NCBI RefSeq assembly: GCF_052425735.1
Contig: NC_135760.1
Coordinates: forward strand, 8,680,001 to 8,744,000
Source: Oculina patagonica
Lineage: Eukaryota
Length of the DNA: 64,000 nucleotides
Direction: 5' to 3'
Below are positions 2,014 to 42,100 of this stretch, in pieces; within the stretch, counting starts at the first letter, position 1; the number at the start of each line of letters is the position of its first letter. A program made the translations under genes and the position numbers. Under the pieces are notes generated by a model. The model was not told the origin of the DNA and ran no database searches. It was given only the letters and a program-made list of their open reading frames with translations.

Positions 2014-5000
2014 TTAGTTTGTACAATAACGAAGATTACAGCCTGGAGTGGGTTTCAGTTTGTAGACATAGAATGAGCCACAGTTGCGTACCGTTATGTA
2101 TGTGGAATAGGTACAAGGATAAGATAAATACGAATATGAACTCGATTTATAGCCAAAACACACTTTTCGAGTGACCCTCCCCTGTTCAACTGACGGATGC
2201 CCCCCAGTTAACCACCCAGTGTAATATGTGTTACAGTTGTTTTTATAACCACACACGGTACTCATTTGTTTTCCGTTTAGAAACTTGTACCAGCCCTCTT
2301 CGAGATTGTTGTCACATCTGTCAGAAGTACCTGGGCTATATGTCCTATATGACACTCGCCTTGTGTCATCAACTATCACTGTATGATCGACGCATTCCGG
2401 ATAAGTACCTAAAAAAGTCAGTTCAAAGATTAGAAAGAGAATTTTAACCATACAGGCAAGTGTTAGATGGAGAGAGCATAAATTTATCGGCAATTAACTG
2501 CAAATTGGGGCAGCTGCCGGTTAACTTGAAAGTTTGGCCATAACTGATCACGCAGTTATCTCTTCGTTTCATAGCAAGGTGAAAAACAATTTAACGAAGA
2601 CCAAACTGATAAGTTCGAAAGAAACCGTGCTTAGTAAGTCATAAAATCACGTCGTGGTTAAAGGAAGTAAAATATCATTTCTTTTAATTGTTTTATTACC
2701 CTAAGCCTTGGAGCCAAGCTAGCCACAACGGTTAGCTGTTGAACTTTCCAATTCTGTGCTATTTGTCTTTTGTCAGTTGAAATTGAACCATTTGCCACGT
2801 TCCAATTAATTCTTTAAGCAATGCATTTGTCAACTACCTGCAGCTTCTATATACTCGATTTGAATTCCATTTGAGTGAAAATCAAAAAAGAACCCTGACT
2901 CATTTTCACTGTATCAAATTCTTACATTGTACTGCATTTCCGCTCCAGTTACCGCTGGGTAAGCATCGTCTGACTGCGGGACCAAACATTGTATATCCCG
3001 GATGACAGAGATATCTGACGTATTCCCCTACCCAGTGGTTGCTGTCGATAAGCACCGCATTCTCTGGCCTACCTGGGTTGCCACAGTTAATTAAAGCTGC
3101 AGGAAAAACAACAGTAACAACAACTAAACTTTGAGTTACTACTCGATTAATAATATTGCTTAGTGCCGTCATTGGTGATGGGGATCTTATTTCGTTTTTG
3201 TCATTACTAAATGTGTAAGGCTAAAGAAGCATCTGGCGTAAAAATTACAGTCGAGACACATCTCTTTTGTTATACGAGAATGATGTAAACACCGGACTTG
3301 GAGAGGGTTATCTCCAAATTTATCCAAACGGTCCGGAACAAGCCCTCAAACGAAAACGGGTATCCAAAATTTTTAAGCCGTGCGAATGCGTAGTACCAAG
3401 CGAAAACGCTATTCTCCAGCCTCTTTCTGATTGGATACAACTGAACAATGGTCGTTAAAGATTTTGTTTCGTGGATAGGGAGGCAAAGGCAAAAGCAATA
3501 CTCAATAGTATAGGGAGTGATGTCAATGGTGCGTCACAACCTTAGGACCCTCGCGCAAATGACAATTACGACGGCGATGCCAAAAGCGACGCATTGTTAT
3601 TATTTTAATGTGCGTCGTTGTAACTTGTATGCGTCGAAGTAATTATGAAATATTCATACTGACTTAAAAAACAAACGGCGCATCGTTGGGGAATAGCGAT
3701 TCCCTTTGGCACCACAAATTGGTGCTACGCATTCGGACGGCTTAAAAATTTTGGATACCCATTTTCGTTCGAGGGCTTGTTCCGGACCGTTTGGATAAAT
3801 TTTCGATCAAATGATACGAGAAGATTCGTCAAGCCTTCCTCTTTTCTGGTGCGTAGTTTAAAAGCTGTGCGATGGGATTATCAGGCCGAAAATCGGCTCG
3901 GCGCTGGAAGTGTTCTACTTTGGAGCTGTTGGAGTTTCCACCCTTTCCATATAATTAGATGTATAGTAAACAGCAAAAGCAAAATACCCTTCAATCGACT
4001 CCAATTCGCCACTTCGAGCCGGAGCCAACAGAACGACACTACATAAAAGGTAGGAAACTTAACATTTTTTCAGAACAAATTTGTTAATGTTTTGCAGCAT
4101 TATACGCAATTCTACAAACCATTTAGTAAATTCCATACATTCTCTATAAAAATGTAAATGTGCACAGTCCATACACAAACAGTTTGTCTGGGCGCCCTGT
4201 GGGCCCACCTGGAAATATCACCAAAGTCCGATCACCACTAATCTTTCTTAAAGCTTACTTACAGCGCCAGTGTGCAAAAATGGCACTAAAGTTGTTGTGG
4301 TATTATTGGGCCATAAAACAGGCAGATGCGAACAGCAACACAACAGTTTTAATCAAGCGAGTAATAGAACATTACATGGTCGACCACGAGGTCGCAACAC
4401 CGTGCCGCAAAGACTACTGGGAAATATTGTTACATAACAGATTACACCACATCTCCCCTTAAGTTAGAAATAAGCTAAATCCTAAATAATCAAAGTTCGC
4501 TCTCAAGTCTGGAGACAATCAGTTCAAATCATTAACTCATGAATAACTGCAGTAAATGAACAAAGTTTACAAGATCAACGCTTAGGTTCACAGTCACAAG
4601 TCTCTAAAACGCTCCGGGGGTCTTATCTCACGACCACTTCGGGTGGTTCTTGAAGGGGCTACAGGGGTCGAGGCAGCTGTAGCTGGGACATTTGGGTCTG
4701 GGCACTTAGCAGTCTGAACATCAGGAGAAGACAAGCTAAGGGCTGTGCTGGTATCTGCATGAGGTGTTTCTGGAAGACGATTCAGGTGGCGCCTGTTTCT
4801 CCTTAGTTGTCCCTTGGGAGTTTCGACTATGTAAGAACGTGGGGGACCAGCTCTGTCCACCACAGTCCCTTCAACGTTTTTGCCCGGTAACCAGACACGC
4901 TCTCCAGGAAGGAGGTCAGGGAGGGTTTTTGCAGAATGACGCCTGTCAAAGTCTCTCTTCTGTCTTTCTTTCAGTGAAGCGTCTTTCTCTCTAAACTGCT

Positions 5001-8000
5001 CAAGGTATGGCCAAGAGGGCTTCAGGTTACTTGGTGAAGTAGGGACTCTAGTGCGGATCTTCCTTCCCATCAGCAGTTCTGCTGGACTTAAGCCGCTTTC
5101 AAGGGGTGTGGCACGGTAAGCCATGAGTGCTTTGTAAGGATCTGGGGATTTCTTGAGTAGATTCTTTACGGTCTGAACTGCGCGTTCGACCTCGCCATTC
5201 GCTTGCGGGTATCTGGGGCTAGTAAGAATGTGAGTAAATCCATAGTCCTCAGCAAATTTGGAGAATGAGGTTGATGAAAATTGCGGCCCATTGTCCGAGA
5301 TGAGTTGCTCAGGAATACCATGTCTTGCAAACATAGACTGAAGGTGCACAGTCACATCTGGTGAAGTAGTATGTGAAAGTTTCGCCACCTCGACGTAACG
5401 AGAAAAATAATCTATGACAAGCAGGTAGGGATGACCTTTTAGTTCAAATAGGTCAGCTGCCACTTTCTGCCAGGGTCGATCTGGTAATTCGGATGGGATC
5501 ACTGGTTCTGCTGGATTTATGCGTTCCTTGATGCAGGTAGGGCATTTCTTGACCACTTCGTCAAGTTGTTGGCTCAGGCCAGGCCACCATACAGATGCTT
5601 TGGCTCTCTCACGGCATTTCGTAATACCCTGGTGTGCCTCATGTAACCTTTCAAGGACATCTATTCTCATGGACAAGGGGACAACCAGTCGATTTCCCTT
5701 CATCAACAGGCCATGTTGTACTGTGAGGTCGCTCCTTTCAGGCCAGTACACTTTAAGTGGACCAGGAAGCTGGGATTTCTCTGGCCAACCTTCAGAACAA
5801 TAAGTGATGAGTTGTCTTGTAATCTCGTCCTGTTGTTGCTGGGACTTGAAGTCTTCCAGTCGGTCGTCAGTTGCTGGTAGGTACTTAACGATCGAGTCGA
5901 CATAAGCTCGTACCTCCGCCTCAAACTTCTCTTCGTCTCGGTCAAGCGGTCTAACTAAGGGTGCCCGGGAAAGGGTGTCTGCTGTGTAAAGGGCCTTCCC
6001 AGGTACATGCGAGATAGAGTAGTTGAATCTCATCATTCGCATACGGAATCGTTGCACCCTAGCTGGTAGATCCTCAAGGTTTCTGGTACTCAGCAGGGGT
6101 ACTAAAGGCTTGTGGTCGGTCTCAACATGGAATTCCAGGCCAATTAGGTAGTCTGCGAAGCGCTCACTGGCCCAGGTGATCCCCAAAGCTTCCTTTTCTA
6201 TCTGAGCGTAACGCTGCTCAGTGGGGCTCATGGCTCGCGAGGCGTATGCGACGGTGCGCCACTCGCCATCATCTTGCAGTTGCATTAACACCGCTCCAAG
6301 TCCATATGACGACGCATCAGACGAAAGTTTCGTTTGGCGACCTGCGTCATAGTGGGCTAGGGTTGGGGTGGAGGTGAGACTCTCTTTCAGGGCTGCAAAT
6401 GCTTGCTGTTGGGCATCACCCCATAACCAGTGACTTTTCGAACTCAGTAGGTCTCTCAGTGGCTTGGATAGCTCTGCAATTTGTGGCTGGAACTTGCTTA
6501 GTTGGTTTACCATGCCGAGGAATCTTCTTAATTCTGTCTGGTCTTGAGGTGTTTTCATCTTCAAAATGGCTTCAATTTTCTTGGGGCTAACATGCACTCC
6601 TTCAGCGTCGACGAGTGTCCCCAGAAATTCAACTGACGGTTTTGAGAATTCACATTTGTCTTCATTTAGAGTAAGGGGAGCCTCCTGTAACTTGTGAAGA
6701 GTTGCTTCCAAATGCTGATTGTGGTCTTTCACTGATTTGCCATACACGAGGATATCATCCATCTGACAAAGAGCACCATCAGTTCCTTCAAGAACTTGCG
6801 AGATTCGCTTCTGGAAGTGTTCAGGGGCTGAACTGATTCCAAATGGTAGGCGGTTAAAACAAAACCTGCCAAATGGCGTGATGAAAGTGGTGAGTTTAGC
6901 TGACTCTGGTGATAAGCCGATTTGCCAGAATCCTGAATTGGCATCAAGCTTACTGAAAATGGTTGCTCCAGCGAGTTGAGCTAAGGTGTGGTCGACACTG
7001 GGAAGGGGATGATACTCCCTCAGGATGCTTTCGTTAAGCTTGGTTAAATCCACGCATATTCGAACTTTGCCATTGGCTTTTGGGACCACTACCATCCCGG
7101 CGCACCATTCCGTTGGCTCATCCACTTTAGAAATAATTTGCATTTGCTCCATCCGGGAGAGTTCTTCTTTGACTTTCGAAAGAAGAGGAACAGGTACTCT
7201 CCTTGGGGTACTAATTGCGTGTGGTTTCGCGTCAGGTTTGAGCTTGATGAGGTAATCGGGACCATCAAGTTTTCCAAGACCTTTAAAGAGATTTGGGAAT
7301 TTTTCTTTAACTTCCTCTGCTTTCACTGCATTGACCTTTTGGACGATTTTTAGCGTCTCTATAGCTGGACGGCCAAGGAGAGCTATGCGTGCTCCAGTCA
7401 CCACAAATATTTCCTGCAATGAAGATTCTTCTCCTCTCTTGATCACTCCCATAAAGCAGCCAAGAACGGGAAGGGATGTATGGGCTGGGCAAAACAGGGT
7501 CTTGCTGGATTGAATGAGGGCCGGAGTTGGTTTCAGCTTTTTGTAGACGCTCTCGGGGATGACAGTGACGTCAGCTCCGGTGTCAATTTTAAAGCGGACA
7601 AGAGAGCTATTTAGAGTGAGGTCTACAGACCAAATGTCTTCGTTTCTCTCAGTCCCAATAGCTCCGAGAAAGGCATAATCTTCTTCGATTTCTCCGACAG
7701 TGTGCGTGGACTTGCAAACAGATGACCAGTGACCTTTTTTCGAGCACTTGTGACATGTCGCGGAGCTAGCCGGGCAGTATTGTCGCGCGTGACCCGGCGA
7801 TCTCCCACAGCGGTCGCAGCGGTTCAATGGTGGACGAGTCGGCGGTTTCTTGGGAGTTTCGCTCGGACTTCCAGACGAGTCGTCTTTTCTAAATTTCGGC
7901 GTCTTCTCCGCTTTCACCGCATCGACTTCATTCTTTGTTCCCGAAGATTCCTTGAAGTCATTTCGCATTAGGATTTGTTGCTTCTTGACGGCTTCGCTCT

Positions 8001-11000
8001 GTCGCGCGTGATCGATTGCTTTTTGCAGCGTTAATTCGGGGTCGAGCTGAAGTTTCTCCGACAATTTCGCGTCTAGAAGGCCTACCACAATTCTGTCTCG
8101 GATCATCTCGTCTGTCAGAGTACCAAAATTGCAGCGTTCGGCGAGCGTATGCAGTGCTGTGATGAATGTGTCAACTGTCTCGCCTTCTTCTTGGCGGCGT
8201 TGATTGAACTTTGCCCGCTCGGCGAACCACGAAATGCTCATCAAACTTCGTTTTAACGGTGTGGTACTGCTTCAATTGTGAAGCACTCAGCTTGAAGGAG
8301 TTTAGAATATCGTCAGCTTGATCTCCCATCGCGTAGATCAGCGTGTTTATTTGACTCTCTTCGTCTTCTTTCACCAGACCAGATGCTTGGCGAAAGCGTT
8401 CGAATCTTCTGCTCCATTTCGGCCACTCTTCTTGACGACTAAAGTCAAACTTTTCTGGTAACTGCACTCGAAAAGACGTCATGGTTCGTTGGAAACCGCT
8501 TCTGACACCATGTGGTATTATTGGGCCATAAAACAGGCAGATGCGAACAGCAACACAACAGTTTTAATCAAGCGAGTAATAGAACATTACATGGTCGACC
8601 ACGAGGTCGCAACACCGTGCCGCAAAGACTACTGGGAAATATTGTTACATAACAGATTACACCACAGTTATAATGGCAATAAAGGTATCGTTTGGATTCT
8701 CTCAGAGGGCGGGCCATTTTCTTAGTAACGTTCGATCGCCAAAAGCGAACGCGAAACAGAAACGCGAAAGAAGAACAAACTAAGGAGGTGAGTCTCGGTT
8801 GCCATGAATTGTTTTGCCTAAATGCCGCTGTTCATAAGGACTGCTGGTTTAATACTGGACGAGAGATTTTAAGATTTATCAAGGTGAATAAACAGACAGT
8901 CTAATATGTACTTGTAATGGCGACTTACATATTCTTGAACTTGCTTCCACTGTGTCGTTGTACACGTTACGAGCAACGCATTTGTAGGTGGCCTGGTCTG
9001 CGGGTTGAAATTCACCAATCACAAGCTCGCTGGTAAACTCGTCTTCGGTGACGTTATCGATGACGTGCATGCCGACGTTATTCTTATACCACGTGACTGT
9101 TGGTAGAGGTGATCCTTTAGCGGAGCAGCTGACTCGGAGCGATTCTCGAATACCGGATACATTGATTGAAGACGGCGGTGTTGTGGAGAACATAGGGAGC
9201 ACTAGGAAAAGCAGAAATACAACTGCTAGTGTTGAATACCAATTGAACTCTAACCATATAGAATAAGACCAAATTTTGAAAATGCTTGTCCCGTAGGCAT
9301 GAATAAAAATTACTAATTTGCACTTTCAACTAAGATTTGTACAGATATACTTTGGTCGTAAATCACACGGGATGTTAAAAAAACACCAAAAGACGAATTG
9401 CTTGCAAGCTTTATGAGCGTCTTACAACATCCCAAGTTGATCTGATAGCGCCAGTAAGGTAGTTAAGAACTGGAAGACGAGAACTGTGTCCCGGGGGGGG
9501 GGGGGGTACTCGAAAAAGTTTTGTACGGGGAGGCTCTGCCCGGAGATCCAACCCCTTACCCTTTTTATATACCATTTTGATAGAAAAGGTACCCCTTTTG
9601 TATACCTTTTATTGCAAAAAGGCACCCCTTTCATATACCTACACGACATCACATTTACCTAAAACGGGACGCTTTCTTGTTATTTTTATGTAGCGCTTAA
9701 TAAATTAAGACAATACAACCAAAAGTTGCGTCTGCTAGAAAGGCCTTTAGAAATATAATTATGGCAGATTTCACTACCCTTTCATATACCTAAATTTATG
9801 AAATCCCTTCCCTTTTATATACCTGGAGCCTGAAAAAGGTACCCCTTTCGGGCGGAGCCTCCCCGTATAGGCCATTATAGGGAGAACCCCCCCCCCCGGG
9901 AACTGTGTGTAAATCTCAAACCAAGCTAGCATAATATTATTATAAGAAAAAAAAACTAACTTTAGATAATTAGGGTTCAGACTTCTGACTGAATGTGACC
10001 GAGTTTCTGCGCCTTCCGCTTAAACGATTTGCTGTATATTGGCCACCTTATAAAAGTACCGAAACCATTGTCAGTAATATACTGTAAATAAACGCAACAG
10101 CAAATAAGGTTACGACTGATAAATACATTTAAACACAAGTCTTTCATATTAAGTTATTTACATTTTTCCATGATTCTGTTCCAATCGCTTTTGTATTCAA
10201 ATAAAGTGAAGTTTCTACCATATATCTGACGAATTCCTATTGTGCGGCTGTTGGCTATTTTCAGTCAACAGCCTCGAGCGTTACCGCTAAATGGAAATTC
10301 GACGATTATTCTAAAAATAAAAGGGAAGCGACAACCTCTAGTTCGAGAAACACCGAAAAATTCAGTTGCATCTGCCCAAGTACTGAGTAGCTGAATCATG
10401 ACTTACCAATAGGCTCGACTTTCAGGAACGTCCCATGAATGATCATTCCATGTTTGTTCGTCACAGTACAGATGTAAACTCCGCCATCGCCGTTTTCAGT
10501 GTTGTTAATATAAAGACTGTCTTTATTCAACGCACTGCGACTCTCGGGGAGTGGTGCGGCTGGCGTCCTGTTCCATTTGATCTCAGGGGTAGGGTAACCT
10601 ACCACATTACATTGCAGTTTTGTTACTTTTCCCAAAAAGCCGATTACTTGCCCTGGAGGTGAGGTGGCGAATCTTGGTGGTCCTATAGTCACGACAAGAA
10701 TGATTAATAATCTTTTGATTGAGGCTAGACCAGAGCTGAGACAAAAAAAGCATCGGGGGGATATGACAAGGGGTATGTCCTGACCAACCAACCAACCAAT
10801 CAATCCTTCAGTCAGTCAGTCAGTCAGTCAGTCAGTCAGTCAGTCAGTCAGTCCGTNNNNNNNNNNNNNNNNNNNNNNNNNNNNNNNNNNNNNNNNNNNN
10901 NNNNNNNNNNNNNNNNNNNNNNNNNNNNNNNNNNNNNNNNNNNNNNNNNNNNNNNNNNNNNNNNNNNNNNNNNNNNNNNNNNNNNNNNNNNNNNNNNNNN

Positions 11001-11044
11001 NNNNNAGCCAGCCAGCAAACCAACCAATCAATCGGTCAGTCAGT

Positions 11045-11075
<31 letters not shown>

Positions 11076-14249: not shown

Positions 14250-14302
14250 GTTTCGTTCAGCAGTGTTGTGAAGAACTAACCCTGTGAACTATGTTGTCTT
14301 AT

Positions 14303-14341
14303 ATAACAGTGGCGTAAAGCCAAGGTGAAATTCTAGACTCA
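14303..14341 (-). promoter_or_regulatory. Invariant 39-bp upstream block (also 25402-25440, 37147-37185, 45227-45265)
   Basis: ATAACAGTGGCGTAAAGCCAAGGTGAAATTCTAGACTCA (plus strand) is identical in all four copies, 54-67 bp upstream of the ATG, while its flanks carry indels. Confidence 0.55.
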
Positions 14342-21800: not shown

Positions 21801-24800
21801 GCCTGAAAAAGGTACCCCTTTCGGGCGGAGCCTCCCCGTATAGGCCATTATAGGGAGAACCCCCCCCCCCCCCGGGAACTGTGTGTAAATCTCAAACCAA
21901 GATAGCATAATATTATTATAAGAAAAAAAAAACTAACTTTAGATAATTAGGGTTAAGACTTCTGACTGAATGTGACCGAGTTTCTGCGCCTTCCACTTAA
22001 ACGATTTACTGTACATTAAACGATAACTCTGATATTGGCAATCTTATGAAAGTACCGAAACCATTGTCAGTAATATACTGTAAAAAACGCAACAGCAAAT
22101 AAGGTTACGACTGATAAATACATTTAAACACAAGTCTTTCATATTAAGTTATTTACATTTTTCCATGATTCTGTTCCAAACGCTTTTGTATTCAAATAAA
22201 GTGAAGTTTCTACCATATATCTGACGAATTTCGATTCTGCGGCCGCTGGCTATTTCCAGCCCCGAGGGTTACCGCTAAATGGAAATTCGACGATTATTCT
22301 AAAAATAAAAGGGTAGCGACAACCTCTAGTTCGAGAAACACCGAAAAATTCAGTTGCATCTGCCCAAGTACTGAGTAACTGAATCATAACTTACCAATAG
22401 GCTCGACTTTCAGGAACGTCCCATGAATGATCATTCCATGTTTGTTCGTCACAGTACAGATGTAAACTCCGCCATCGCCGTTTTCAGTGTTGTTAATATA
22501 AAGACTGTCTTTTTTCAGTGCACTGCGACTCTCGGGGAGTGGTGCGGCGGGCGTCCTGTTCCATTTGATCTCAGGGGAAGGGTAACCTACCACATTACAT
22601 TGCAGTTTTGTTACTTTTCCCAAAAAGCCGATTACTTGCCCTGGAGGTGAGGTGGCGAATCTTGGTGGTCCTATAGTCACGACAAGAATGATTAATAATC
22701 TTTTGATTGAGGCTAGACCAGAGCTGAGACAAAAAAAGCATCGGGGGGATATGACAAGGGGTATGTCCTGACCAACCAACCAACCAATCAATCCTTCAGT
22801 CACAGACAGTCAGTCAGTCAGTCAGTCAGTTAGTCAGCCAGCCAGCCAGCTAACCAGCCAGCCAGCAAACCNNNNNNNNNNNNNNNNNNNNNNNNNNNNN
22901 NNNNNNNNNNNNNNNNNNNNNNNNNNNNNNNNNNNNNNNNNNNNNNNNNNNNNNNNNNNNNNNNNNNNNNNNNNNNNNNNNNNNNNNNNNNNNNNNNNNN
23001 NNNNNNNNNNNNNNNNNNNNNNNNNNNNNNNNNNNNNNNNNNNNNNNNNNNNNNNNNNNNNNNNNNNNNNNNNNNNNNNNNNNNNNNNNNNNNNNNNNNN
23101 NNNNNNNNNNNCAGTCAAGCCGGCAGGCAGGCAGGCGTTTTAAAGGTAATCAGTATTCCGTTCAGCATTCCGTACACTTCAATCCAAGTATATTTACCGT
23201 AACTGCAAGTGAAACGGACTCACCAAAAACAATAAGTTTCACATGTGCCACTTGAATACCAAACAAATTCTCTGCGTGACACGTGATCTTTCCTCGATCC
23301 TCGAAGCGGACTGCCATGATCTCAAAGGTTTCAGCGGTAGCCTTAAATCGGCTTCGGTTACCATGGTTTCTAGTTTGTAAAGACCACGTAATCTTTGGAA
23401 CGGGATTTCCAAATGTAGAAATATTCAGTGACAGCTTGCTGCCCTCTCTGATGGAGATGGACTGTGGAATCTTGGACGTGAAACGAGGAGGAGCTGGGGA
23501 CGAGAGAAAGTATGTGTGATAAGCTCTGAAAAAGTGCACAACTGGTTTCACGGAGACATGTGTCTACAGTTTTACACGAACCAAAACCATATAATTGGTA
23601 AATAAACAAGGTTCAAAAGGGCTTTAACTTAACAGTCATTGTTATACATACCCTTTTAAAAAAGAACAGCTTAAAAGCCCCATTCCTTTTGGGGGAATAG
23701 AGTTGAGTTTGGACGTACTTACCAAATTTTGTCATCTCTCTTTGGGTGTAAGCCTCTAATCGTTTAGCGAGCTTCTCAATGAATGTTATGTTCATGCTAG
23801 AGCTCTTTCCTGGAGACCCACGAGGACCTCTTCTTCCAGGTGGCCCGGTTTTACCAGCGGGGCCTGGACGGCCACGACGTCCGCGGGGTCCTTGTTCTCC
23901 GGGTGGACCCTGAGGACCTAAATTTTAAAAGGGGTCCAATTATTAATAATTGTGTTCAAGTTTTTGGTATCATGTTCTTCACTAGTACATTCTTAAAAAA
24001 GATTAATAGAAAGGTTATTATGGAAGGCAGAAGGAGGTACTGTTAATTCTCCCCGTGGGGGGGGGGGGGCACTCACATGTATGAGCTATATAGGTATGTG
24101 CCGCTGTGAAGGGTATGGTTTTCAAGCAGTTCAGTCTGGAATAGGTTATAGAAATCAGAGAGGTTTGGTCTAGAATAGGGTATCATTTGCCGAATAACTG
24201 ATTAGTAGTATGAGGAATTAAGTCCAAAATCATCACACCAACGTTGTTGACAGATGGTGTTCCATTAAAAACACAAATAGTGACACAGTTCTGAAAACGG
24301 CAGGTCTGGGATAGGGTAGGAATTTCCGGTGTTTAGTCTAGAAAAGGGTTGCAAAATCAGCTGAACAGGGTCTAGTATAGGGTAAGGGTTTCAGAGTCCT
24401 AGCGGCACACCACCACCCAAAAAATATAGGGTACCCCCCCCCCCCCCTTCCCGCCAACCCCGGACCAACGCTAGTATTTTTTCGCTCAGGTTTCTCGATA
24501 CCCATTTATGCTTATCTGGTTGCAGAGAGGCATTGCTCGAGTAAGATGTTCTTCCCCAAGAACACACCACAAGTGTCCCTCTAACAAATACCAAATTCCC
24601 CCGACATCTGCGGGAATCCAATTCACTACCCCAGGTGTTAGGGCCGCATTCGCGCCATTCTTGAAACCGACCCCGATTAGGTGAAAACCGGCGTTCAATT
24701 TCCTTATAAGGAAACAGCTGATCTATACTGACCTCTCATGCAGACAAGCTTGCCAGTTCCGTTCACTGTGTTCTTTACCTTCAGCAATAAAAAGAAGACA

Positions 24801-30886: not shown

Positions 30887-33800
30887 TTAGTTGGTACAAT
30901 AACGAACATTACAGTCTGGAGTGGGGTTCAGTTTGTAGACATAGAATGAGCCACAGTTGCGTACCGTTATGTATGTGTGATACATGCAACAAGATGGACC
31001 CGATTTTCGGCCAAAACACACTTTCCGAGTGACCCTGCCCTGCTCAACTGACGAATGCCCTCCGGTTAACCACCCAGGAGAATCTGTGTTGCATTTGTGG
31101 ACCTCAGCACACTGGGTACTCATGTATCTTCCGTTTAAAAACCTGTACCAGCCTTCAGCTAGATCTTTGTCACATTTGTGATCAGCGAGTCCATAGGTCA
31201 CTCGTCTTGTTTGATCAGTTATCACCTCGTGATGGAAGCATTCTGGCCATGGTTTAGTGCTGCCTGAATTAGTAAATTTAAGATTAAAATTAAATTTTAC
31301 ACTGCAAGTGGGTTATGCCAAAGTTAACATATAGCAAACATTAAGAAGAGAATTGATGCGCAGTGCTGTCACGAGGAACTTCGAGCTGTTCGAGAACGTG
31401 ATGAATTCTTTCTCGTGTTTGATACATTATAATTTCCTAATCAAAACTGAAACTACGGAGTAATTGCTAATTTCGATCAGATGTCTAAACCACCGTCAAA
31501 TGTCGGGGATTGAGAAAGGTGGGAGAGGGTGTTTACTTGCCGCCAGTCAATGATTATCTAACACAATTACCGTCATTTTTTGGTATTTGTATGTTAGCCA
31601 TGATAATGACTTTTTTCACCCAGTATTGTTCAAGAAAGTTTGCCGTAAATGATCTAATAAACGCCCACTCTCAAATAAACGCCTCGTATGTAATAAACGC
31701 CTCCCCTGAAGTGTAAAGTTTGTATTAGACGCCCCTCTCTAATAAACGCCTCGTGTCTAATAGACGCCCCACTCCAAGAATCATCTCAAAAACCAAGGAA
31801 ATGGTCCATAGAGTAAAATCACGCAATAAAGTTAGTTTTTTGCTTGACTCGGACATCGAAGAGGCCAACAACGCCAACATGGTTGACCCCGATGACGATA
31901 AAAACGTTGATATCGAACTATGAACGACATCTTTAGACTTTGCATTAGCGCAGATTAGATTATTCTCCTACTCACAAACTCTGTTATGTATCTTACTCCA
32001 CTAGAAAACAACCCATCCTATTTGTTGTTTTGAAGTTGTTACTGTTAAATTGAAATAAACGTCTCTCTCTAATAAACGCCTCATATCTATTTAACGCCTC
32101 CCCTAGGACCCTCAAAATATAATAGACGCCCGGGGCGTTTATTATATCATTTACGGTAAGTTGTATCAAATTCTTACATTGTACTGTATTTCCGCTCCAT
32201 CTGCCGCTGGGCAAGCATCTTTTAACTGCGGGACCAAACATAAAATATCCCGGTTTACAGAGGTACCTGACGTACTCCCCTACCCAGTAGTTGCTGCCGA
32301 TAAGCACCGCATTCGATGGTTTTCCTGGGTGGCCACAGTTGGGTAGAACTAAAGCATGAGAACAATGCAATGAGTTACATACACCTAATTGAAGAAACGT
32401 TGACCATGTGAAAAGCGTAAACAATGAGGAGTATGATCCAATGGTATTCTGGGTAGACGGCTTAGCTAAGTCAGTAATCAAGATATTTTCTTTCTTTGAG
32501 AGCCTTAAGAGCATGATTTATGCAACCTGTCACTATAATGTTTATTCTGTCACAGAGGACTATTAATTTTTTTCTGATTTCCCAGTAAACACTTGCGTTG
32601 TATCGTTCATGGTTTATGCTTTTAATGGGTCGACGATTTTTCAATCAGGTGTATGTAGTGTTCTGTCAGTAGTTAATCTGAGTATCATTAATGCCCGAAA
32701 ACAGACCCACCCGAGAATAAGCACATCAAAAAAGCGTTTTGAACAAAACTGAGCTCAGGACTTGGAATTTAGGTAAACCAAGCATAGCTGGTTTTCTTCC
32801 GATTATTTAGTAGGCTAAAACGTCCGAACAACACTTATCTTTCTAAAAGCTGAATGTACAATTATGGAAAACGGTTCATAGTGGGCAAGATTGTTTTGCT
32901 TCCTACTTGACTCTCAAGATCAAGGTGAGGGAAAAAGGACGGACTGCTAACAGTCTGGTTAATTTATACAATGGTGACTTACATATTTTTGAAGTTGTTT
33001 CCACTTTGTCGCTGTACACGTTACGAGCAACGCATCTATAGGTGGCCTGGTCTGTGGGTTGAAATTCACCAATCACAAGCTCGCTGGTAAACTCGTCTTC
33101 GGTGGAGTTATTGACGACTTGCACTGTGACGTCATTCTTGTACCACGTGACTGTGGGTAAAGGCGAGCCTTTGGCGGAGCACTTGACTCGGAGCGATTCT
33201 CGAATACCCGACACAGAGATTGAAGATGACGGTGTTGTGGAGAACATAGGAAGTACTAGGGAAGGTAAAGTAACTGTCAATGGTAGTGCACTGTAATTCA
33301 ACTCTGTCAAATTTCGTGCCAAATCAAGTGGGTAACGCCTGGGTACTGGCAGTTACTGGCATTATAAACCATTAAGAATAGAAAGCACTTCTAAAGTGCC
33401 TGTACTATAGGCTACAAAGAAACGGACTCTGATCGAGCTTTGACTAAACACATTTGCATTGTGAAGTTAACGATTCTTTTCATACTAGGCTTCGTTCTTT
33501 CATTTTTCGAGGTTTTCAGCATATAGTCGAAGCACAAGTATACTAAGTTTAATATTGACTACATTCAGTAGCTCACCAACAGGCTCCACTTTTAGGAACG
33601 TTCCATGAATGATCATTCCATGTTTGTTTGTCGCAGTACAGATGTAAACTCCTCCATCACTGTTTTCAGTGTCGTTAATATGAAGACTGCCAATTCTCAC
33701 TGCACTGCGATCTTGGGGGAGGGGTGACGGGGGAGACCTGTTCCATTTGACCTCAGGGGTAGGGTAACCTACCACGTCACAATGCAGTTTTGTCGCTTTT

Positions 33801-36800
33801 CCCAGGAAACCGATTACTTGTCCCGGAGGAGTGGTGGGGAATCTTGGTGGTCCTATACAGCACAGCAAGAACAAATATAATCAACGGCTAAATTAATTGA
33901 GGTAAGACACAAGGCACAAATAATTCAGGGCCTAAAATGTTCTACCCGAGAGGTCTGGCCCTGACTGATATCGGCATATGTTGGGTANNNNNNNNNNNNN
34001 NNNNNNNNNNNNNNNNNNNNNNNNNNNNNNNNNNNNNNNNNNNNNNNNNNNNNNNNNNNNNNNNNNNNNNNNNNNNNNNNNNNNNNNNNNNNNNNNNNNN
34101 NNNNNNNNNNNNNNNNNNNNNNNNNNNNNNNNNNNNNNNNNNNNNNNNNNNNNNNNNNNNNNNNNNNNNNNNNNNNNNNNNNNNNNNNNNNNNNNNNNNN
34201 NNNNNNNNNNNNNNNNNNNNNNNNNNNNNNNNNNNNNNNNNNNNNNNNNNNNNNNNNGAAACCAACAAAAGAGCAGTCAACCAACTAACTGCACGTGATG
34301 TCGGCTTCTAAATTCAATTTCCTCGAAGTTTTCTCTGGTAGCCTAGTCCCCCGCCCCCCCCCCCCCCAAAAAAAAGGAAAGTGAGGGAAAAATAGCCGTT
34401 GGTGGCTAAAAAAATTGATTTCAGTGTTAAAACCATGTCTCCATTCGCTTACTAAACTTAAATATGCTCCGTTAGAGAGACCTCAGTATGCTCTTTTCCT
34501 TGCTTTTTAAAGGTAATCAGTATTTTGTTCACCATCCCTTACACTTCCTAATTATATCTAAAGTAACTGAAAGCGAAACAAACTTACCAAAAACAATAAG
34601 TTTCACATGTGCCACTCGAATACCAAACACATTCTCTGCGTGACACGTGATCTTTCCTTGATCCTCGAAGCGAACTGCCATGATCTCAAAAGTTTCAGCG
34701 GTAGCCTTAAATCGGCTTTGGTTACCATGGTTACTGCCGTGTAAAGACCACGTGATCTTCGGAGCTGGATTTCCGGAAGTAGAAACATTAAGTGACAGCT
34801 TGCTGCCCTCTCTGATGGAGATGGACTGTGGAATCTTGGACGTGAAACGAGGAGGAGCTGGGGACCAGAGAAAGTTTGTATGACAAGTTCTGAGAAAGTA
34901 CACAACTATACCTTATATGAACTGATAAATGCAAGGGATATTTTAGCTACTAATTTCACGAAAACGATATATACCCCTAAAATGTTAATATTTATACAGT
35001 TCCACACAAACCAAAACCACACAATTAGTAAATTAATAAACATGGCTCAAAAGGGCTATAAGAGTACAAAAATGTTCCCCGCGAATCATTTCCTAAAATT
35101 CTATATTCGCTATTTTCACCGTTCCTATACTACAGCTTGTTTTCCCCGAAAAATTTTTGCATAAGCATTGTTTTCAATTTCTCTTGGGATTTACAATGAC
35201 CTACAATCGTCCCAAGAGAAATTGAAAACAATGCTTATGCAAAAATGTTGGGGGTAAACAAGGTGTATTATGGGATCGTGAAAATAGCGAATCGGCCATG
35301 TCGGCGAGAAAACTTGAACAGAAAATTGCAGGTTTTAATGCTTCCAAAGACCTTCCGAGTCATTAGAGAGATTAAGCATAACGTTATACGGCAAACGGCA
35401 AACACGAGCTTGCCTTTCATTTTGTTACCTAATTATGGAATTCTAAAATTAATCCCACATAAAAAAAGGGAAAAACTCCCCCATTCACGACAAATACAAA
35501 ACTACTCATTTCCGCGTACGAACGCTAAAATGCAGACGGCAGACTTTGATTTTTTGCCATTTGCGGGAAAAATAAAGGTCATGTTTAATGTCTCTAATGT
35601 TTACAACAATGTGTGCTATATTCAAAGATGTGAATCTAATTATGATAATTCGCTATGTCCAGCGCACGGGACACAAAGCCGAGAACAATTGCTTGTAATT
35701 ACTTTTACAAAGGACTTAAAAATAAAACGGAAACTTCGTGCCCTTCTCTTTGCGAATAGTGTGTGGGTTCTTTAATGTCCACTTCTATCAGACTGAACCA
35801 TCTTTAAACAACAGCAACAACAACAAAAACAAGAACAAACGAAAGCCTCCGTTCCTCTTTAAATAAATGGAAGCAAGGTTCTGAGTTTGTACGTACATAC
35901 CAAATTTCGTCATCTCTCTTTGGGCATGTTGGGTGTAAGCCTCTAATCGTTTGGCAAGCTTCTCGATGAATGTTATGTGTACGCTAGCGCTCTTTCCTGG
36001 AAACCCACGAGGACCTCTTTTTCCAGGTGGCCCGGTTTTACCAGAGGGGCCTGGACGGCCACGACGTCCGCGGGGTCCTTGTTCACCGGGTGGGCCCTGA
36101 GGACCTTAAAGTGTCCATGTATCAATTGTGTTTAGATTTGCGTTTAGGATTATAGGAGTGGTTTTTAGGGAAGCTAGAAGGAAGTTTTGCGTATCCTCCT
36201 GAGTGGGAGACTAGCCTTTTGCAGCCACTTCCTCACCCAGCCCGAGTTTCACCCGTCTATACCGATATGGTTGCAGAGAGGCATTGTGGAAGTTAGATTT
36301 TCTTTCCCAAGATCGTAACACAACACAAGTGGCTATCAAACATTTAATACCAAAGTTCCACATCTGCGGGAATCCAATGGATTGCGCTACCCCAGATCGA
36401 GAAGTTAGCCGCATTCGCGCTTTTTTTGAAACGGATCCCGATTTAGGTAAAAATTCGACAGCAAAACAGCTGATTGATACTGACCTCTCATGCAGACAAG
36501 CTTGCCTGTTCCATTCACTGTGTTCTTAACCTTCAGCAATAAAGAGAAGACCATGAATCATTTCAGAGTAAGCGCACAGTAGTAAATAAAGAGCGTTCGC
36601 CGTTCGAACAGCCACGAGTGACTAGACTTTTTCTATAGACATTTTACAAGTCGATCTTCGCTTAATTATTGCAATGCCCTCTCACGGGAACATAATTGAT
36701 AAAGTCTGAAATATTATTAGAAAGGACAATAACCTCAGTGACTCACCTACCTGAAAATAGTTTAGCGCCTTCTGAAGGCAATCTTCGTTTATGTTTTGCT

Positions 36801-37080
36801 TTGTTGCAGTTGTTTTAGACGTCTCCTGGCTGAGGCGATCATTTCCATCACTTCTGCGATCACGAGAATGTTTGTCAACAGTCGCAGCTGTAGAAGCTGG
36901 AATCGTCTCAGTCATGACATTGTTACTGTCACGAGTGGACAATTCGTGTCGAATAAACGACAGCTCACTCTCAAGGAAGTAAACTTTGTACGACAGAACC
37001 GCAATTGAGAGGATCGTAAACACAAGATGCAGAATTTGCACGATATTGGAGGATTTTGTGGAAGCTTGACTTGCCGCCAT
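30887..37080 (-). CDS. Array copy 3: TM-collagen-3xIg-CCP-D10C protein, 8 exons, ~648 aa
   Basis: Exons 37080-36751, 36530-36485, 36104-35901 (9-nt in-frame insertion, YTQHAQRE), 34857-34588, 33852-33577, 33255-32983, 32348-32178, 31263-30887. GT-AG, 1947 nt open. N gap in the Ig1-Ig2 intron. Confidence 0.88.
31643..32156. mobile_element. Tc1/mariner(pogo)-type MITE
   Basis: CCGTAAATGATCTAATAAACGCC .. GGCGTTTATTATATCATTTACGG followed by TA; internal AATAAACGCC repeats. Sits about 20 bp from the CCP donor of copy 3. Confidence 0.75.
33988..34257. other. Assembly gap (270 N) in the Ig1-Ig2 intron of copy 3
   Basis: N run. Confidence 0.99.
35105..35597. mobile_element. Two adjacent small MITEs (35105-35292 and ~35363-35597)
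   Basis: attcgctattttcac / gtgaaaatagcgaat and tagagagattaagcat / atgtttaatgtctctaa inverted ends. Confidence 0.6.
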
Positions 37081-37396
37081 GTTTCGTTCAGCAGTAGTAG
37101 TAGTACGTGTTGTAACAAACTAACCCTGTGAATTAAGTTGTCTTCAATAACAGTGGCGTAAAGCCAAGGTGAAATTCTAGACTCAGCGCATGCCTCAGTG
37201 AATGCCTCTTGAATCCCTCTGTTCTCAGTTCAGCTTTTCAGCTTTTGGCAGTCAACGAATTAATAACAAAGCTTGCCTCTCATGGAGAAGGTGACATCAC
37301 ATAAGATGACCATGACCAACGCAGTAGACTCAAAAGTAGTGTGACACTGACCGGATTGATAAAAACACTCCTTGTTTTCCCTTTTTCTTGAAGTTT

Positions 37397-38346
37397 GTCG
37401 TGGGGGATACCTACAGCATGAATAAATTCATGAAGGGAAATTTTGCTTGACCTGCATCTTTTAAAACGCTTATTTCTCAGCTGTTATGGTGCGATTAAGC
37501 TCAAATTTTACAGAGACATAAAGAAATGATGAAAGATTGTGAATGTCGTATTTTATTTGGTAGATTGCATTTAACGTCGATGTTATAGCCTCGTGAGTGC
37601 CAAATTGGGAAAAACATGATTTTGTGGCAGAGTTTGCGGAACGAGTAGGAGACAGCACACTGGGATCTTGTCAAAAACTAATCAGTCAATACCTGTAGAG
37701 TGTAATTTAAGTTGAGTGTAAGTTAATTTAAAGTTTGCCAGCAAACTACGGCGGTTTAAGTGCGCAAATTTGAATTTAATGTCTTCTACCTCTTTCTAAA
37801 AGCGCTCTTTTAAAATTCCGCTTCTGTTATGACATACTACAGTATTCATAGTTTACCTATCTGCAGTGGCAAGTCATGAAGTTCTGTATCCGTGCTGTAT
37901 TCTCTGCCACAAAATTGTCGGAAAAGTCAAAACTTTGAGATTTCCGAAGGTGTCCCGACCTAAATACGATCATTTTGCCAAGGATAGATGTAATTATGGT
38001 AATTATATTCCACGCTTTTATGGCGAGAACAATGCGTTTTTAAATAGGACACGATTGTTTATGCCGAATATTTTTGTGATTACTCTGAGTTGCAGAAATA
38101 TTCAAATTTAAATGAAAACAAGCTCAAAGACTTCCTGCAATCTATATGAACGTATATCGCTAAGTGTTGTTTAAATTGGTTAAAATATCAAGGAAACAGG
38201 ATTTTTTTACAAATCACGCGCACGCGCCCATATTTTTATCCAGTCATAAATATCTCGTAAAGTTGTCGATGTCAGTCGTTGTACGTACTTCGTGCATACG
38301 CTTTAAATAAATGCATAATGATGAGCCTAAGGTGTCCCCCGCGACC
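37397..38346. mobile_element. Related Kolobok-like element with clipped left end
   Basis: Right end AGGTGTCCCCCGCGACC followed by TTAA. Left end GTCGTGGGGGATACCT matches it but lacks the terminal G and the TTAA. Confidence 0.65.
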
Positions 38347-39143
38347 TTAAGCCAGTGAGCAGCACCTCTGCGAACTACTTGAGTTGAAAAACTTTGTTAT
38401 TCTCATTTACGTGTTTCGTGTGACAAACCCGAAAACTCGAACTCCGTTGATGGATTAGTATTTTTCCTGGGCGTTCCGGTTGGCAACTGCGTTACTTGCA
38501 TCACAACTGTGAAAATCAATTTCAATTTTATTATCTGAGCAACTATGCTAATAACCAGTTGTATTTAAATGGTAGAATATTTTATTGAATGGTAACAAAC
38601 AACACAACTACATTTACAAACATTTACAATATCAACAAAAAACTGAAAAAGAAATTCATACTAAATAAATAACAACAGCAAGAAAAGAAAAAAAAAAATC
38701 AAAAAGTAAAAATGTGGATTGCAATAGTAGCCATCTAAGCGGAATGTAAATATGGGTATGACTCTATCACTCCAAAAATCTTTTTCCCTGTACGCCATGT
38801 GCTGTTAATAATGAATAAAATAGAATTAATTTTGTTGTGGTTCGGTGTAATAATTAAGGCAATGTTTGGCATAGCAAAGAACAAAATCTCCCTGATGTAA
38901 TACGATGTTCTGATGGCTTCTGCGCATCTAGATCCGGACGCACGCAGTGTTCTGTGTATTGTAAAAGTAACATTAAAAAAGTCCGATCTCACATTGTAAA
39001 CGTTATTTGCCAAATGCATTTTTTTACACTAGTTGACAGTCTTATACCCCTAAAGTTACGGCTTGTTTAAAGACCTGCACATTAGTTGCATTATAGTCTG
39101 AAGATCAAAAACCGTTTGTGAAGCTCAAGGCTATTAAACACAC

Positions 39144-42100
39144 TTAGTTTGTACAATAACGAAGAGAACAGCCTGGGGTGGGTTTCAGTTTGTAGACATA
39201 GAACGATCCACAGTTGCGTATCGTTATGTATGTGAAATAGGTACAAGGACAAGATGAACCAGATTTTTTGCCGAAACACACTTTTCGAGAGACCCTGCCC
39301 TGTCCAACTAACGGATGTCCTCCAATTAACCACCCAGGGTAATGTGTGTTGCATTTGTGGACCTCGGCACAACTTTCGCTCAAGCGTCTGTTTAAAAACC
39401 TGTACCAGCCCACAACTAGACCACTGTCACAACCGTCGTAAGTATGTTTAATGTTCACTTGTCTTGTGTAATCATCTATCACTGTGTGACGGACGCATTC
39501 TGGTTTATTGGTACCTAAAAAAGTTCAATAGAAGAATTAGTATATTTTAAAGTGGGAGGTGCAGGGTCATACATAGCCTCCTCCGCAGGCAATTCCCTTT
39601 GTTACAGAAGGGAGACTGGGACTCAGCAAAAGAGCAAAAAAGGCAAGGGGGAGCGACAATCTCGAGCCCAGAATGTCCCACGGCTCCTCCGTCAGCGGTT
39701 GGTCAGCAGTAGCGCCGGGACACAGAGTCCATTCCTTACCGCTGACCGACGGACTCTGGGCTCAAGATTGGGGGGAGCGAGAGAAAGAAAACTCCCTCGT
39801 CCCAGTCTTCCTCTCTACAAGTCCCAGTTTTCTCTTTTTTCTCTGCTACCCCAGGAAACCCAATATTAAGGATTACAAGAAGTAGCCTGCGAAGGAGGCT
39901 ACGGATCATACAGTGAAATGTATTGAAGGGGAGTTTTATCGTGTATCAAATTCTTACATTGTGGTCCAGCATATCCACTCCATCTACCACTTGGCAAGCA
40001 TCGTCTGACTGCAGGACCAAACATAGTATATCCCGGATGACACAGGTACCTGACGTACTCCCCTACCCAGTAGTTGCTGCCGATAGGCATCGCATTTGAA
40101 GGTGTACCTGGTTTGCCACAGCTGGGTAGAACTAAAGCATGAGGACAATACTGTGAGTTACATATGTAGTGTACTGTTGTTAATCTGAGTATCATCAATG
40201 TCCGAAAATAGACCCACCCAAAAATAAGCCCACAAAAAAGCGTTTTGAACAAAACTAAGCGCAGGACTTAGAATTTAGGTGAACCAAGCATAACTGGTTT
40301 TCTTCGATTATTAAGTAAGTTAAAGCGTCCGATCAACACTATATCTTTCTAAAAGCTGAATTCCCACCCGAGTGTGCAAATATGGCATACGGGTCATTTA
40401 CTAATGCTGTATCACGAAGCGAACGATAAATGATAACACAAGGAAAACAAAGTAAGTTTCTGTAGTCAAAATAAGTTTAAATTTTCATCATTCTTTAGCA
40501 ACCCACTAGCTTGGTTGCTACAAATTATTTCAATAAAACAGTAGACTGTCCGTAAGCTCGACAGGAAAACGAAGCGGCGAAGCGTGTTTTGCTTCCTACC
40601 TGACTATCATGATCAAGATGAGGGCTAAAGAACGGACTGTTAACAGTCTGGACTCATTTGTTTGAAGGGCGGATAATGGTATCCACCGGATAGCGTTATC
40701 AGACCCTTGAACAACTGGGCCCTGGTTTGTGCAATGGCGGCTTACATATTTTTGAACTTGTTTCCACTGTGTCATTGTACACGTTACGAGCAACGCATAT
40801 ATAGGTGGCCTGGTCAGCGGGTTGAAATTCACCAATCACAAGCTCGCTGGTAAACTCGTCTTCGGTGGAGTTATTGACGACTTGTACTGTGACGTCATTC
40901 TTATACCACGTGACTGTGGGTAAAGGAGAACCTTTGGCGGAACACTTGACTCGGAGCGATTCCCGAATACCCGACACAGAGATTGAAGACGACGGTGTTG
41001 TGGAGAACATAGGAAGCACTAGGAAGATAAAGTTATTGCCAATGTCAGTACACTGTGTAGCGGCCAGTGCTCGAATAAACACGAAAACGACGACTACTGG
41101 AGTTTACTCGAGGTATTAAAGGCACCAAGAGGAATTAAGTAGTTTACGGACAAGAGTTTTAAATTGATCGGAAGTTTGTTGTCAGCAAAATCCAAGATCC
41201 TATGGTAAACTGAGATCAACAATACTAGAAAATCAAACCTAATATTCCGATCATTCCACGAAAAAGTTGCAAGACGATAGAAACCTCGAGCTTACCGTCT
41301 AATTGTTAATTAGCTAACATCCAGGGCACCGTCGTTACACACTGTAACTCAACTCTGTAAGATTTCGCGCCAAACCAAGTGAATACCGTATATACTCGAA
41401 TAAGCGCTTATTAAATTTTTGGCGCCTCAAGTGCGGCGCTTATTCGGGTGCGGCGCTTATTTGAGGGCGGCGCTTATTTAAAATTTGGACGCCACAAAGA
41501 ATCTTATCTTTTACAGTTATTGAAAAGAGCGTCTTTTGACCGTCAGTATTTGTCTCTTGCTGAGACAGAAGTGGCGCTAGCTGTCGTGGCAAAGTTTGCG
41601 GCCTTCACAACATTTACAGAACTACGTATTGTAAGAGTGTTGAATAGAAAAACTAATGGGCGAGCGATTAAACAATCACTCATACCTGCAAAACATCGCT
41701 TTTGATGCAAAGAAATGTTCAAGCTTGTTTTAGAGTTGTTTTGTAGTGCCGTTTAAAGTTAAACGAAATAAGAGCGCCGCATCGGGACTGCCGCGCTTAT
41801 TCGGGGGCGGCGCTTATTCGAGTAAATACGGTAGCTGAGGAAGGGAACGTCTGATCGAGTACTGGCAGTAACAATTAAGGATGAAAAGCACTTCTAAACT
41901 GCCTGTACTATAGGCTATAAAGAAACGGACTCTGATCGAGCTTTGACTAAACGCATTTACATTATAAAGTTAACGATTCTTTTCTTACTAGGCTTCTTTC
42001 TTTTACTTTCGTAGGTTTTTAGCATATAGTCGAAGCTCAAGTATATTAAGTTTAATATTGACAACATTATAGCTTACCAACAGGCTCGACTTTCAGGAAC

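Follow-up and report, generated by a model that had tools for sequence, protein, structure and literature searches.

Proteins built around a collagen stalk, such as MSR1, MARCO, SCARA5, CL-P1, the collectins and the ficolins, are organised as a type II anchor, a spacer, a collagen triple helix and a helical segment, followed by trimeric C-terminal heads. Among invertebrates, the snail FREPs, the amphioxus VCBPs and the sea-urchin Sp185/333 proteins are germline-diversified families of many genes, and it is their outermost binding domain that varies. To our knowledge, corals have no adaptive immunity, and the receptors with which they sort symbionts, commensals and pathogens are largely unknown. 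The D10C fold, in turn, is known only as a vertebrate glycan-presenting decoy. In GP2, its ten cysteines are paired as C1-C8, C2-C9, C3-C6, C4-C10 and C5-C7, and the disulfide-rich end is placed opposite the groove (PMC8930769). Moreover, the teleost omcin genes represent a lineage-specific tandem expansion of D10C that was linked by its authors to resistance to bacterial infection, positive selection being unmentioned in that paper (PMC11415648). None of the three elements is new by itself: the D10C fold, receptors that form trimers on a collagen stalk, and recognition domains under diversifying selection have all been described. The present work deals with a stretch of 64,000 nucleotides of the coral Oculina patagonica (positions 8,680,001 to 8,744,000 of contig NC_135760.1, assembly GCF_052425735.1; hereafter, the window), which, when compared with itself, was found to contain four intact tandem paralogues on the minus strand, each having eight exons, encoding 644-651 amino acids (aa) and ending in a D10C head. 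We read their product, with a probability of about 50%, as a trimeric, probably furin-shed, collectin-like recognition protein, in which the loops of the head drift while a few positions are adaptively replaced, with ligand binding as their putative role.

Fold of the D10C heads and location of their variation

The four terminal exons matched the Pfam family PF23283 (D8C_UMOD) with E-values from 5e-11 to 1e-12 and scores of 43-48.5 bits (cut-off, 27). The head of copy 1, modelled with AlphaFold2 from a 75-sequence alignment, reached a predicted local distance difference test (pLDDT) score of 92.5, the confidence dropping only at two loops, referred to below as A and C. When this model was searched with Foldseek, only the D10C structures of GP2 and uromodulin (UMOD) were retrieved, with template modelling (TM) scores of 0.77-0.79 and E-values from 1e-11 to 4e-9; the GP2 decoy module 7p6r was matched at TM 0.79 and E 1e-11, and the next match, an unrelated one, had an E-value of 0.25. 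The modelled head, therefore, has the GP2/uromodulin D10C fold. Regarding glycosylation, no NXS/T sequon was found in the four heads. The residues that correspond to UMOD N275 and GP2 N65, where the decoy module bears its high-mannose N-glycan in the groove between hairpin and D10C, form no sequon either, reading K116 (VYKLK) and C-V-D-H-T. Other D10C subfamilies of the O. patagonica genome present CxNYT or FNGT at the UMOD/GP2 glycan positions and, in particular, many of the genomic D10C exons, unlike the four-gene array, have kept CxNYT as a sequon where GP2 has N65. Furthermore, neither the beta-hairpin before D10C nor the ZP polymerisation module after it is present in the four copies. GP2/UMOD was considered as a functional template, that is, as a glycan decoy, and rejected, given that the copies have neither the sequons nor the hairpin. 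Since the heads have no N-glycan sequon, the vertebrate glycan-decoy mechanism is not applicable to this collagen-stalked D10C family, and binding through the protein surface appears more likely.

The mapping of the cysteines on the coral head placed the end of loop A at Cys2, loop B between Cys3 and Cys4, and loop C between Cys5 and Cys7, where it holds Cys6 and ends at Cys7. According to the C3-C6 pairing, loops B and C would be stapled together, while the end of loop A would be tied by C2-C9 to the residues around Cys9, and the end of loop B by C4-C10 to the C-terminus; these pairings were transferred from GP2 (PMC8930769), the one point of support within the family being the joint loss of Cys3 and Cys6. 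All ten cysteines are found in copies 3 and 4, whereas copy 1 lacks Cys6 and copy 2 lacks both Cys3 and Cys6. Loop A (all coordinates on the minus strand) is located at 2352-2317 in copy 1 (SYRTYSPGTSDR, with S28 encoded at 2325-2323), 19193-19167 in copy 2 (GYKPGTSDK), 31198-31175 in copy 3 (TYGLADHK) and 39455-39432 in copy 4 (NIKHTYDG). Loop B is found, following the same order, at 2259-2236 (TVCGYKNN, with K55 encoded at 2244-2242), 19109-19086 (TVYGYRNY), 31117-31094 (TQCAEVHK) and 39377-39354 (ESCAEVHK), and loop C at 2151-2116 (YKSSSYSYLSYP), 19001-18975 (YKSSSYSFP), 31009-30989 (RKSGPSC) and 39269-39246 (KKSGSSCP). In addition, Cys9 of copy 1 is flanked on either side by G122 and N124 (2043-2035), the predicted partner of this cysteine being the Cys2 at the end of loop A.

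An initial annotation of the window, made by eye, had proposed that the divergence of the terminal domain is concentrated in these three loops, and this was confirmed by counting: 29 of the 32 loop columns vary among the four copies, compared to 30 of the remaining 94 (odds ratio 20.6, Fisher's P-value of 4e-9). Overall, 59 of the 126 D10C columns are variable, half of them outside the three loops, and between copies 1 and 2 a total of 12 out of 17 differing columns fall within the loops, including six indel columns. The descriptive claims of that annotation also held, as all the loop strings were present as quoted in the four copies, the core motifs described as intact (RYCTN included) appeared in all four, each motif once per copy, and every indel was a multiple of three, including the three indels reported between copies 1 and 2 (-3, +9 and +9), whose exon lengths are 395 and 380. 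Moreover, the loops of copies 1 and 2 are indeed rich in Tyr and Ser, which account for 47% and 42% of the loop residues, respectively, compared to 13% in the rest of the domain; the corresponding values in the loops of copies 3 and 4 were 13% and 21%.

Regarding the Cys3-Cys6 bridge, both cysteines are kept at the aligned positions in 29 out of 35 sequences and, with a one-column shift of Cys3, in L048, while both are absent in four sequences (copy 2, L046, L062 and L066) belonging to two separate clades. The share of Tyr, Ser and Gly in loops B and C ranged from 0.57 to 0.93 in the sequences without this staple, compared to 0.06-0.50 in the others. The predicted bridge was lost twice independently, each time alongside Tyr/Ser/Gly-rich B and C loops, and copy 1, with an unpaired Cys3, is an intermediate.

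Tests of selection and competing explanations

The diversifying selection put forward by the initial annotation was based on changes counted by eye between copies 1 and 2, the young pair. Its numbers of replacement and silent changes agreed with those obtained by the Nei-Gojobori method for Ig2 (2 vs. 3) and CCP (1 vs. 4), while those given for the terminal domain (8 vs. 2) were too low, as 14 replacement and 3 silent changes were found. Across the pairs of copies, the ratio of replacement to silent substitution rates (dN/dS) calculated by this method varied from 0.55 to 1.31 in D10C and from 0.21 to 0.37 in the rest of the gene, and the replacement-to-silent ratio was higher in D10C than in the other exons for all six pairs (Fisher's P-values from 0.03 to 3e-5). 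No pair of the six had a D10C dN/dS significantly above 1, and two of the older pairs were nominally below it (P-values of 0.03-0.04).

Codon site models were then applied to the copies together with relatives whose DNA was taken from coral metagenome and metatranscriptome contigs, using home-made code with a fixed topology and proportional branch lengths that reproduces, for the 35 D10C exons considered below, the IQ-TREE likelihood (-5884.33). For the full domains in nine taxa, the one-ratio model (M0) yielded dN/dS (ω) values of 0.32 for Ig1, 0.38 for Ig2, 0.41 for Ig3, 0.33 for CCP and 0.63 for D10C, the value for D10C, although below 1 over the domain, being 1.5-2 times as large as those for Ig1-3 and CCP. 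In the same taxa, the likelihood-ratio test (LRT) statistic of M2a against M1a was 19.8 for D10C (P-value of 5e-5), compared to 0-0.5 for Ig1-3 and CCP. With 35 D10C exons of the subfamily, this statistic rose to 70.6, the sites being distributed in three classes of ω 0.08 (45%), 1 (50%) and 3.5 (5%). Posterior probabilities above 0.95 were obtained for S28 in loop A, K55 in loop B, and G122 (1.00) and N124 (0.98) flanking Cys9. The signal was maintained when gappy columns were removed (LRT 71) and when the two halves of the domain were analysed on their own trees (LRT 30.4 and 14.9), the run on separate trees adding more sites within loops A and B, as well as two immediately following Cys2, with probabilities of 0.87-0.99. 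K55 is the best-supported selected site, and G122 is located within a gap-free, well-aligned stretch; both were kept (P >0.98; 0.985 for G122) in a stricter test, a FUBAR-like grid that allows the synonymous rate to vary and in which a replacement rate of 0.01 is used in place of zero. Furthermore, a second, more distant subfamily comprising 45 coral D10C exons yielded an LRT of 83, and its selected sites were located where loop A ends, within loop C and ahead of Cys9, four of them being kept by the FUBAR-like grid. The position before Cys9 selected in this subfamily is homologous to a site selected in the subfamily of the window. These models suggest that the loops are mostly free to drift, while a repeatable signal of adaptive replacement is confined to a handful of positions, located in loops A and B, in the flank of Cys9 and, for the second subfamily, in loop C. 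The earlier interpretation was, then, partly supported, being right in kind and overstated in extent: the site models find a class of sites with ω >1 in D10C and none in the Ig and CCP exons, while neither the domain nor, in the relatives outside the window, the loops as a whole exceed 1. Likewise, loops A and B of its proposed surface do hold selected sites, and the flank of Cys9 adds sites that it had not listed.

Several observations weigh against adaptive replacement or limit it, some of them speaking for relaxed constraint only, under which the loops, lying on the surface, would tolerate nearly any residue or length and drift neutrally after duplication, the apparently selected sites would be artefacts of recombination, of alignment next to indels or of saturation, and the head would have a conserved function, for example in adhesion or matrix assembly, that makes no use of the loops. 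First, ω over the whole D10C was 0.53-0.63, significantly lower than 1, and about half of the D10C sites belong to the class of ω = 1. Second, when the loops were treated as blocks in 31 relatives, the window's own copies being excluded, ω was 1.34 for loop A, 1.15 for loop B, 0.49 for loop C and 0.94 for the three together, compared to 0.41 for the core; thus, most of the loop variation looks like relaxed constraint. Loop C, in particular, consists largely of low-complexity Ser runs and changes mostly by indels. The higher loop ω of 3.0 (P-value of 0.011) within the cluster and its nearest relative is biased, because the loops had been defined as variable from these same sequences. Third, the 14 replacement and 3 silent changes of the young pair are compatible with neutrality, and the divergence of its D10C exon (around 4.6%) equals that of the local non-coding DNA (K 0.04-0.10), so that copies 1 and 2 alone cannot separate selection from drift. 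The comparison of copy 4 with contigs of other sequencing runs, with replacement-to-silent counts in D10C of 7:3 and 3:4, showed no clear excess either. Fourth, only two sites of the subfamily survived the test with a varying synonymous rate, and the site tests can be inflated both by long trees (11.5 substitutions per codon) and by sequence exchange between paralogues. Finally, the gathering of the selected sites at one disulfide-rich pole is deduced indirectly, from the disulfide map of GP2. However, relaxed constraint alone would not readily explain the strong preference for M2a over M1a, also without gaps and on separate trees, the absence of such a class when the Ig and CCP exons belonging to these genes and taxa are tested, the selection of G122 in a stretch free of gaps, or the independent selection of the end of loop A and the position before Cys9 in the second subfamily. 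It is, for these reasons, considered a serious competitor, although less likely than the combination of drifting loops with a few adaptively replaced positions.

The excess divergence of the 3′ end could also reflect a mosaic history, in which gene conversion homogenises the 5′ exons and misses the 3′ end, the D10C exons having merely been separate for longer. In agreement with this, the silent divergence (dS) of exon 1 was 0.08-0.18 in every pair, compared to 0.31-0.40 for D10C between the older copies; the 5′ introns align across all the copies (K 0.08-0.19), while the introns flanking CCP and D10C hardly align beyond the young pair; and the topology differs among the domain trees. A mosaic history does lie behind part of this excess, and any site test run on paralogues has to be read with gene conversion in mind. 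As a full explanation it seems improbable, since dN/dS, which is corrected for age, is still highest in D10C, and since the young pair has in D10C its lowest dS (0.038) together with its highest dN (0.050). Moreover, it accounts for part of the raw divergence, not for its concentration in the loops.

Another proposal concerns allorecognition, with heads highly polymorphic within the species that bind one another between colonies. The tandem cluster of membrane-anchored, Ig-containing proteins with a variable outer domain resembles in outline the Alr complex of Hydractinia, and the contigs of other runs differed from copy 4 by 3-5%. However, the same 3-5% was found in the other exons and in the flanking non-coding DNA, which indicates that D10C is not specially polymorphic, and the replacement-to-silent counts of these contigs, given above, point in the same direction. 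This proposal is, therefore, regarded as very improbable.

Gene models, stalk and relatives

In the four proteins, a 15-residue tail is followed by a hydrophobic anchor, a spacer with an RDRR motif, a collagen stretch, a short helical segment, three I-set Ig domains, a CCP domain and the C-terminal D10C, the domains identified with Pfam being Collagen, three I-set, Sushi and D8C_UMOD. The tail, the anchor and the RDRR spacer are encoded by exon 1, and the collagen stretch and helical segment by exons 2 and 3. From the collagen exon onwards to D10C, all junctions between domain exons are in phase 1; CCP directly precedes D10C, the codon of its last Cys being split over the junction between both, and the stop codon comes directly after RYCTN. 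The hydrophobic stretch following the first 15 residues, with Lys on its N-terminal side and acidic residues afterwards, is a putative signal anchor. Copy 1 (14249-2014, 651 aa; all coordinates on the minus strand) consists of exon 1 (14249-13920), exon 2 (13674-13629), the collagen and coil exon (11849-11655), Ig1 (11425-11156), Ig2 (10682-10407), Ig3 (9201-8929), CCP (3096-2926) and D10C (2408-2014). In the same order, the exons of copy 2 (25348-18873, 646 aa) are found at 25348-25019, 24778-24733, 23917-23723, 23493-23224, 22670-22395, 21142-20870, 19931-19761 and 19252-18873; those of copy 3 (37080-30887, 648 aa) at 37080-36751, 36530-36485, 36104-35901, 34857-34588, 33852-33577, 33255-32983, 32348-32178 and 31263-30887; and those of the gapless copy 4 (45162-39144, 644 aa) at 45162-44833, 44579-44534, 43845-43651, 43189-42920, 42353-42078, 41018-40746, 40131-39958 and 39514-39144.

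The exon borders were established from four-way alignments and then corrected by aligning contigs of RNA-like sequencing runs to copy 4. All the exons have AG/GT borders, and the reading frame is uninterrupted in the four copies. Spliced contigs reproduced the joint between Ig3 and Ig2 exactly (41018|42078) and, in one contig, that of CCP with D10C, while another joint, running from the end of exon 1 to around 44575, exposed exon 2 and shifted the collagen acceptor 8 nt upstream. Copy 4 or a near copy is, accordingly, transcribed and spliced. Exon 2, which is easily overlooked by eye because of its 46 nt, is conserved in the four copies and in distant relatives, and encodes a conserved Cys immediately ahead of the collagen helix that could form an interchain disulfide. 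In addition, the model of copy 2 is 100% identical over its 646 aa to the hypothetical protein ACROYT_G009185 (P0091) of O. patagonica, and that of copy 4 is 100% identical over its full length to ACROYT_G009187 (P0092) of the same species, so that the gene models are independently confirmed. The same architecture appeared in cDNA-like contigs of relatives.

Runs of N interrupt copy 1 (10857-11005), copy 2 (22872-23111) and copy 3 (33988-34257), in all cases within the intron between Ig1 and Ig2, no coding frame crossing them. A missing exon inside these gaps is unlikely, as Ig1 is joined directly to Ig2 in the gapless copy 4 and in the cDNA-like contigs of the relatives. A tblastn search with copy 1 detected no further exons in the window outside the four genes; a fifth match to RYCTN, on the plus strand at 54115, was dismissed as due to chance, its reading frame being full of stops. 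The Ig3-CCP intron of copy 1 contains an uninterrupted pol-like open reading frame of 1216 aa (4597-8244, minus strand) with reverse transcriptase, RNase H and integrase domains, as well as a weak aspartyl protease match under the Pfam cut-off. It is a long terminal repeat (LTR) retrotransposon insertion, which explains the length of this intron, 5.8 kb compared to 0.6-0.9 kb in the other copies. High-copy repeats were also observed in the introns of copy 4 (41144-41943, 43144-43343 and 43944-44343), where each of the four runs showed a contig depth between thousands and tens of thousands.

Concerning the stalk, the collagen stretch comprises 13 uninterrupted Gly-X-Y triplets (29.8 bits in Pfam Collagen; cut-off, 27.2). 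Its length differs between close relatives (the cDNA-like contigs L064 and L059), and the species compared have between 13 and 22 triplets, so the stalk is variable in length as well. When three copies of the collagen exon product were modelled together, a staggered three-chain bundle was obtained for residues 1-39, with a score of 0.58 compared to 0.02 for the best control, at least 90% of the contacts being common to the runs and the partner pLDDT being at least 76. Of the proteins used to calibrate the mark applied to such scores, 21 of the 30 whose solved structure is a pair of one chain attained it, compared to none of the 23 solved as single chains; as this calibration used two copies and microbial proteins, and as the collagen result may reflect memory of solved collagen helices, which abound among known structures, the score supports a trimer, short of showing one. 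An RX[KR]R motif precedes the collagen by around 50 residues in each of the 14 D10C-headed members examined (the window's four copies plus ten relatives), which covered Oculina, Porites, Montipora, Acropora and one more contig. The stalks, moreover, contain 7-11 NXS/T sequons each in the four copies.

Full-length relatives with the same domain set were found in Porites, Montipora, Acropora, Stylophora and Desmophyllum. Most of them are annotated as hypothetical or uncharacterised, and a few bear the automatic names 'protogenin A-like' and 'roundabout homolog 1-like', which are misleading. Proteins P0111-P0114 (Stylophora, Oculina and others) share the stalk, that is, the anchor, the collagen, the three Ig domains and the Sushi domain, at around 33% identity, and end in pentaxin, TLDc or five Sushi domains and a cEGF, a pattern that amounts to head swapping on a common stalk. 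The 529-Mb genome offered 320 candidate D10C/D8C exons, of which at least 150 were scored, mostly in tandem clusters such as those at C1:26.48-26.72 Mb, C5:28.9-28.97 Mb and C9:13.37-13.59 Mb; the nearest ones outside the four-gene array are only around 52% identical to it.

Proposed mode of action and relation to known systems

Under the reading of a shed, trimeric recognition protein, the product would be a type II membrane protein held by its N-terminal signal anchor and most likely trimerised by the collagen stretch, and cleavage at the furin-type RDRR would release a three-headed molecule similar to a collectin or a scavenger receptor. Its heads, having no glycan, would more likely make contact through the protein surface itself. 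The three loops and the flank of Cys9 would be joined by Cys2-Cys9, Cys3-Cys6 and Cys4-Cys10 at a disulfide-rich pole, which would face away from the link to the N-terminal stalk and in which both length and sequence vary between paralogues and species; this is where the binding surface of a stalked, trimeric and glycan-free head would be expected, and where the selected sites probably gather. The replacement of a few positions, repeatedly and faster than silent sites, would fit an arms race or the tracking of a ligand, the likeliest targets being microbial or symbiont surface molecules.

A broader and more doubtful proposal is that these proteins belong to an undescribed class of secreted or membrane trimeric pattern-recognition molecules of stony corals, with exchangeable heads (D10C, pentaxin and TLDc) on a stalk of collagen, three Ig domains and CCP. 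In this class, the D10C heads would have turned from glycan presenters into antibody-like binders, their pole being diversified by point changes, by indels and by the twice-independent loss of Cys3-Cys6 with the gain of Tyr/Ser/Gly-rich loops. If so, the at least 150 D10C exons would constitute a large germline repertoire for telling apart microbes or symbionts. In any case, the collagen-stalked D10C family is spread across Scleractinia (Oculina, Porites, Montipora, Acropora, Stylophora and Desmophyllum), which places in corals, without its glycan, a fold otherwise known from vertebrate decoys, and the variation, placed by the disulfide map at the opposite pole, points to a second mode of using it. 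Together with exact gene models and a confident fold, the analysis provides a shortlist of positions (S28, K55, G122 and N124) that can be swapped between natural paralogues. In the published literature on D8C/uromodulin in corals, only mentions of ZP-type 'uromodulin' were found and none of a collagen-Ig-CCP-D10C architecture, which is not mentioned either in a paper on tandem duplications in Porites and Pocillopora; nor was any account found of a D10C lacking its glycan, or of selection acting on particular sites in the D10C heads of corals.

Among the described systems, the closest to the head is the D10C of GP2 and uromodulin (PDB 7P6R and 7PFP; PMC8930769), with which it shares the fold (TM 0.77-0.79), 32-33% identity and, in copies 3 and 4, the ten-cysteine pattern. 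Moreover, loop A corresponds to the flexible loop preceding Cys2 in these proteins, and loop C to the betaE/loop/betaF stretch of UMOD that is bound by Bence-Jones proteins (PMC8930769). In contrast, the coral protein has no ZP module, EGF domain or preceding beta-hairpin, with CCP found instead; it lacks a sequon at UMOD N275 or GP2 N65; it is predicted to be of type II, is stalked by collagen and is not filament-forming; and its copies 1 and 2 have no Cys3-Cys6 bridge. The teleost omcins resemble the coral genes in the tandem expansion of D10C-bearing genes, but they keep a ZP/EGF architecture and a glycosylphosphatidylinositol anchor, with one to several D10C copies (PMC11415648). On the other hand, the overall design resembles that of the class A scavenger receptors, collectin-12 and the soluble collectins and ficolins, a likeness that is a comparison of design, as the sequence kinship is limited to the collagen repeat; the coral head is D10C and not SRCR, C-type lectin or fibrinogen, and three Ig domains and CCP are placed between the collagen and the head. 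The colmedins and membrane collagens (gliomedin, collagens XIII, XVII, XXIII and XXV, and ectodysplasin) combine a type II topology with a collagen stretch and release their ectodomain at a furin-type site, the coral RDRR being conserved and its cleavage predicted, although their C-terminal domains are olfactomedin or TNF-like. Finally, the FREPs, VCBPs and Sp185/333 proteins are built from unrelated domains, and neither somatic diversification nor extreme polymorphism was evident in the coral array, which shares with them the concept of a multigene family whose outermost binding domain is the variable part.

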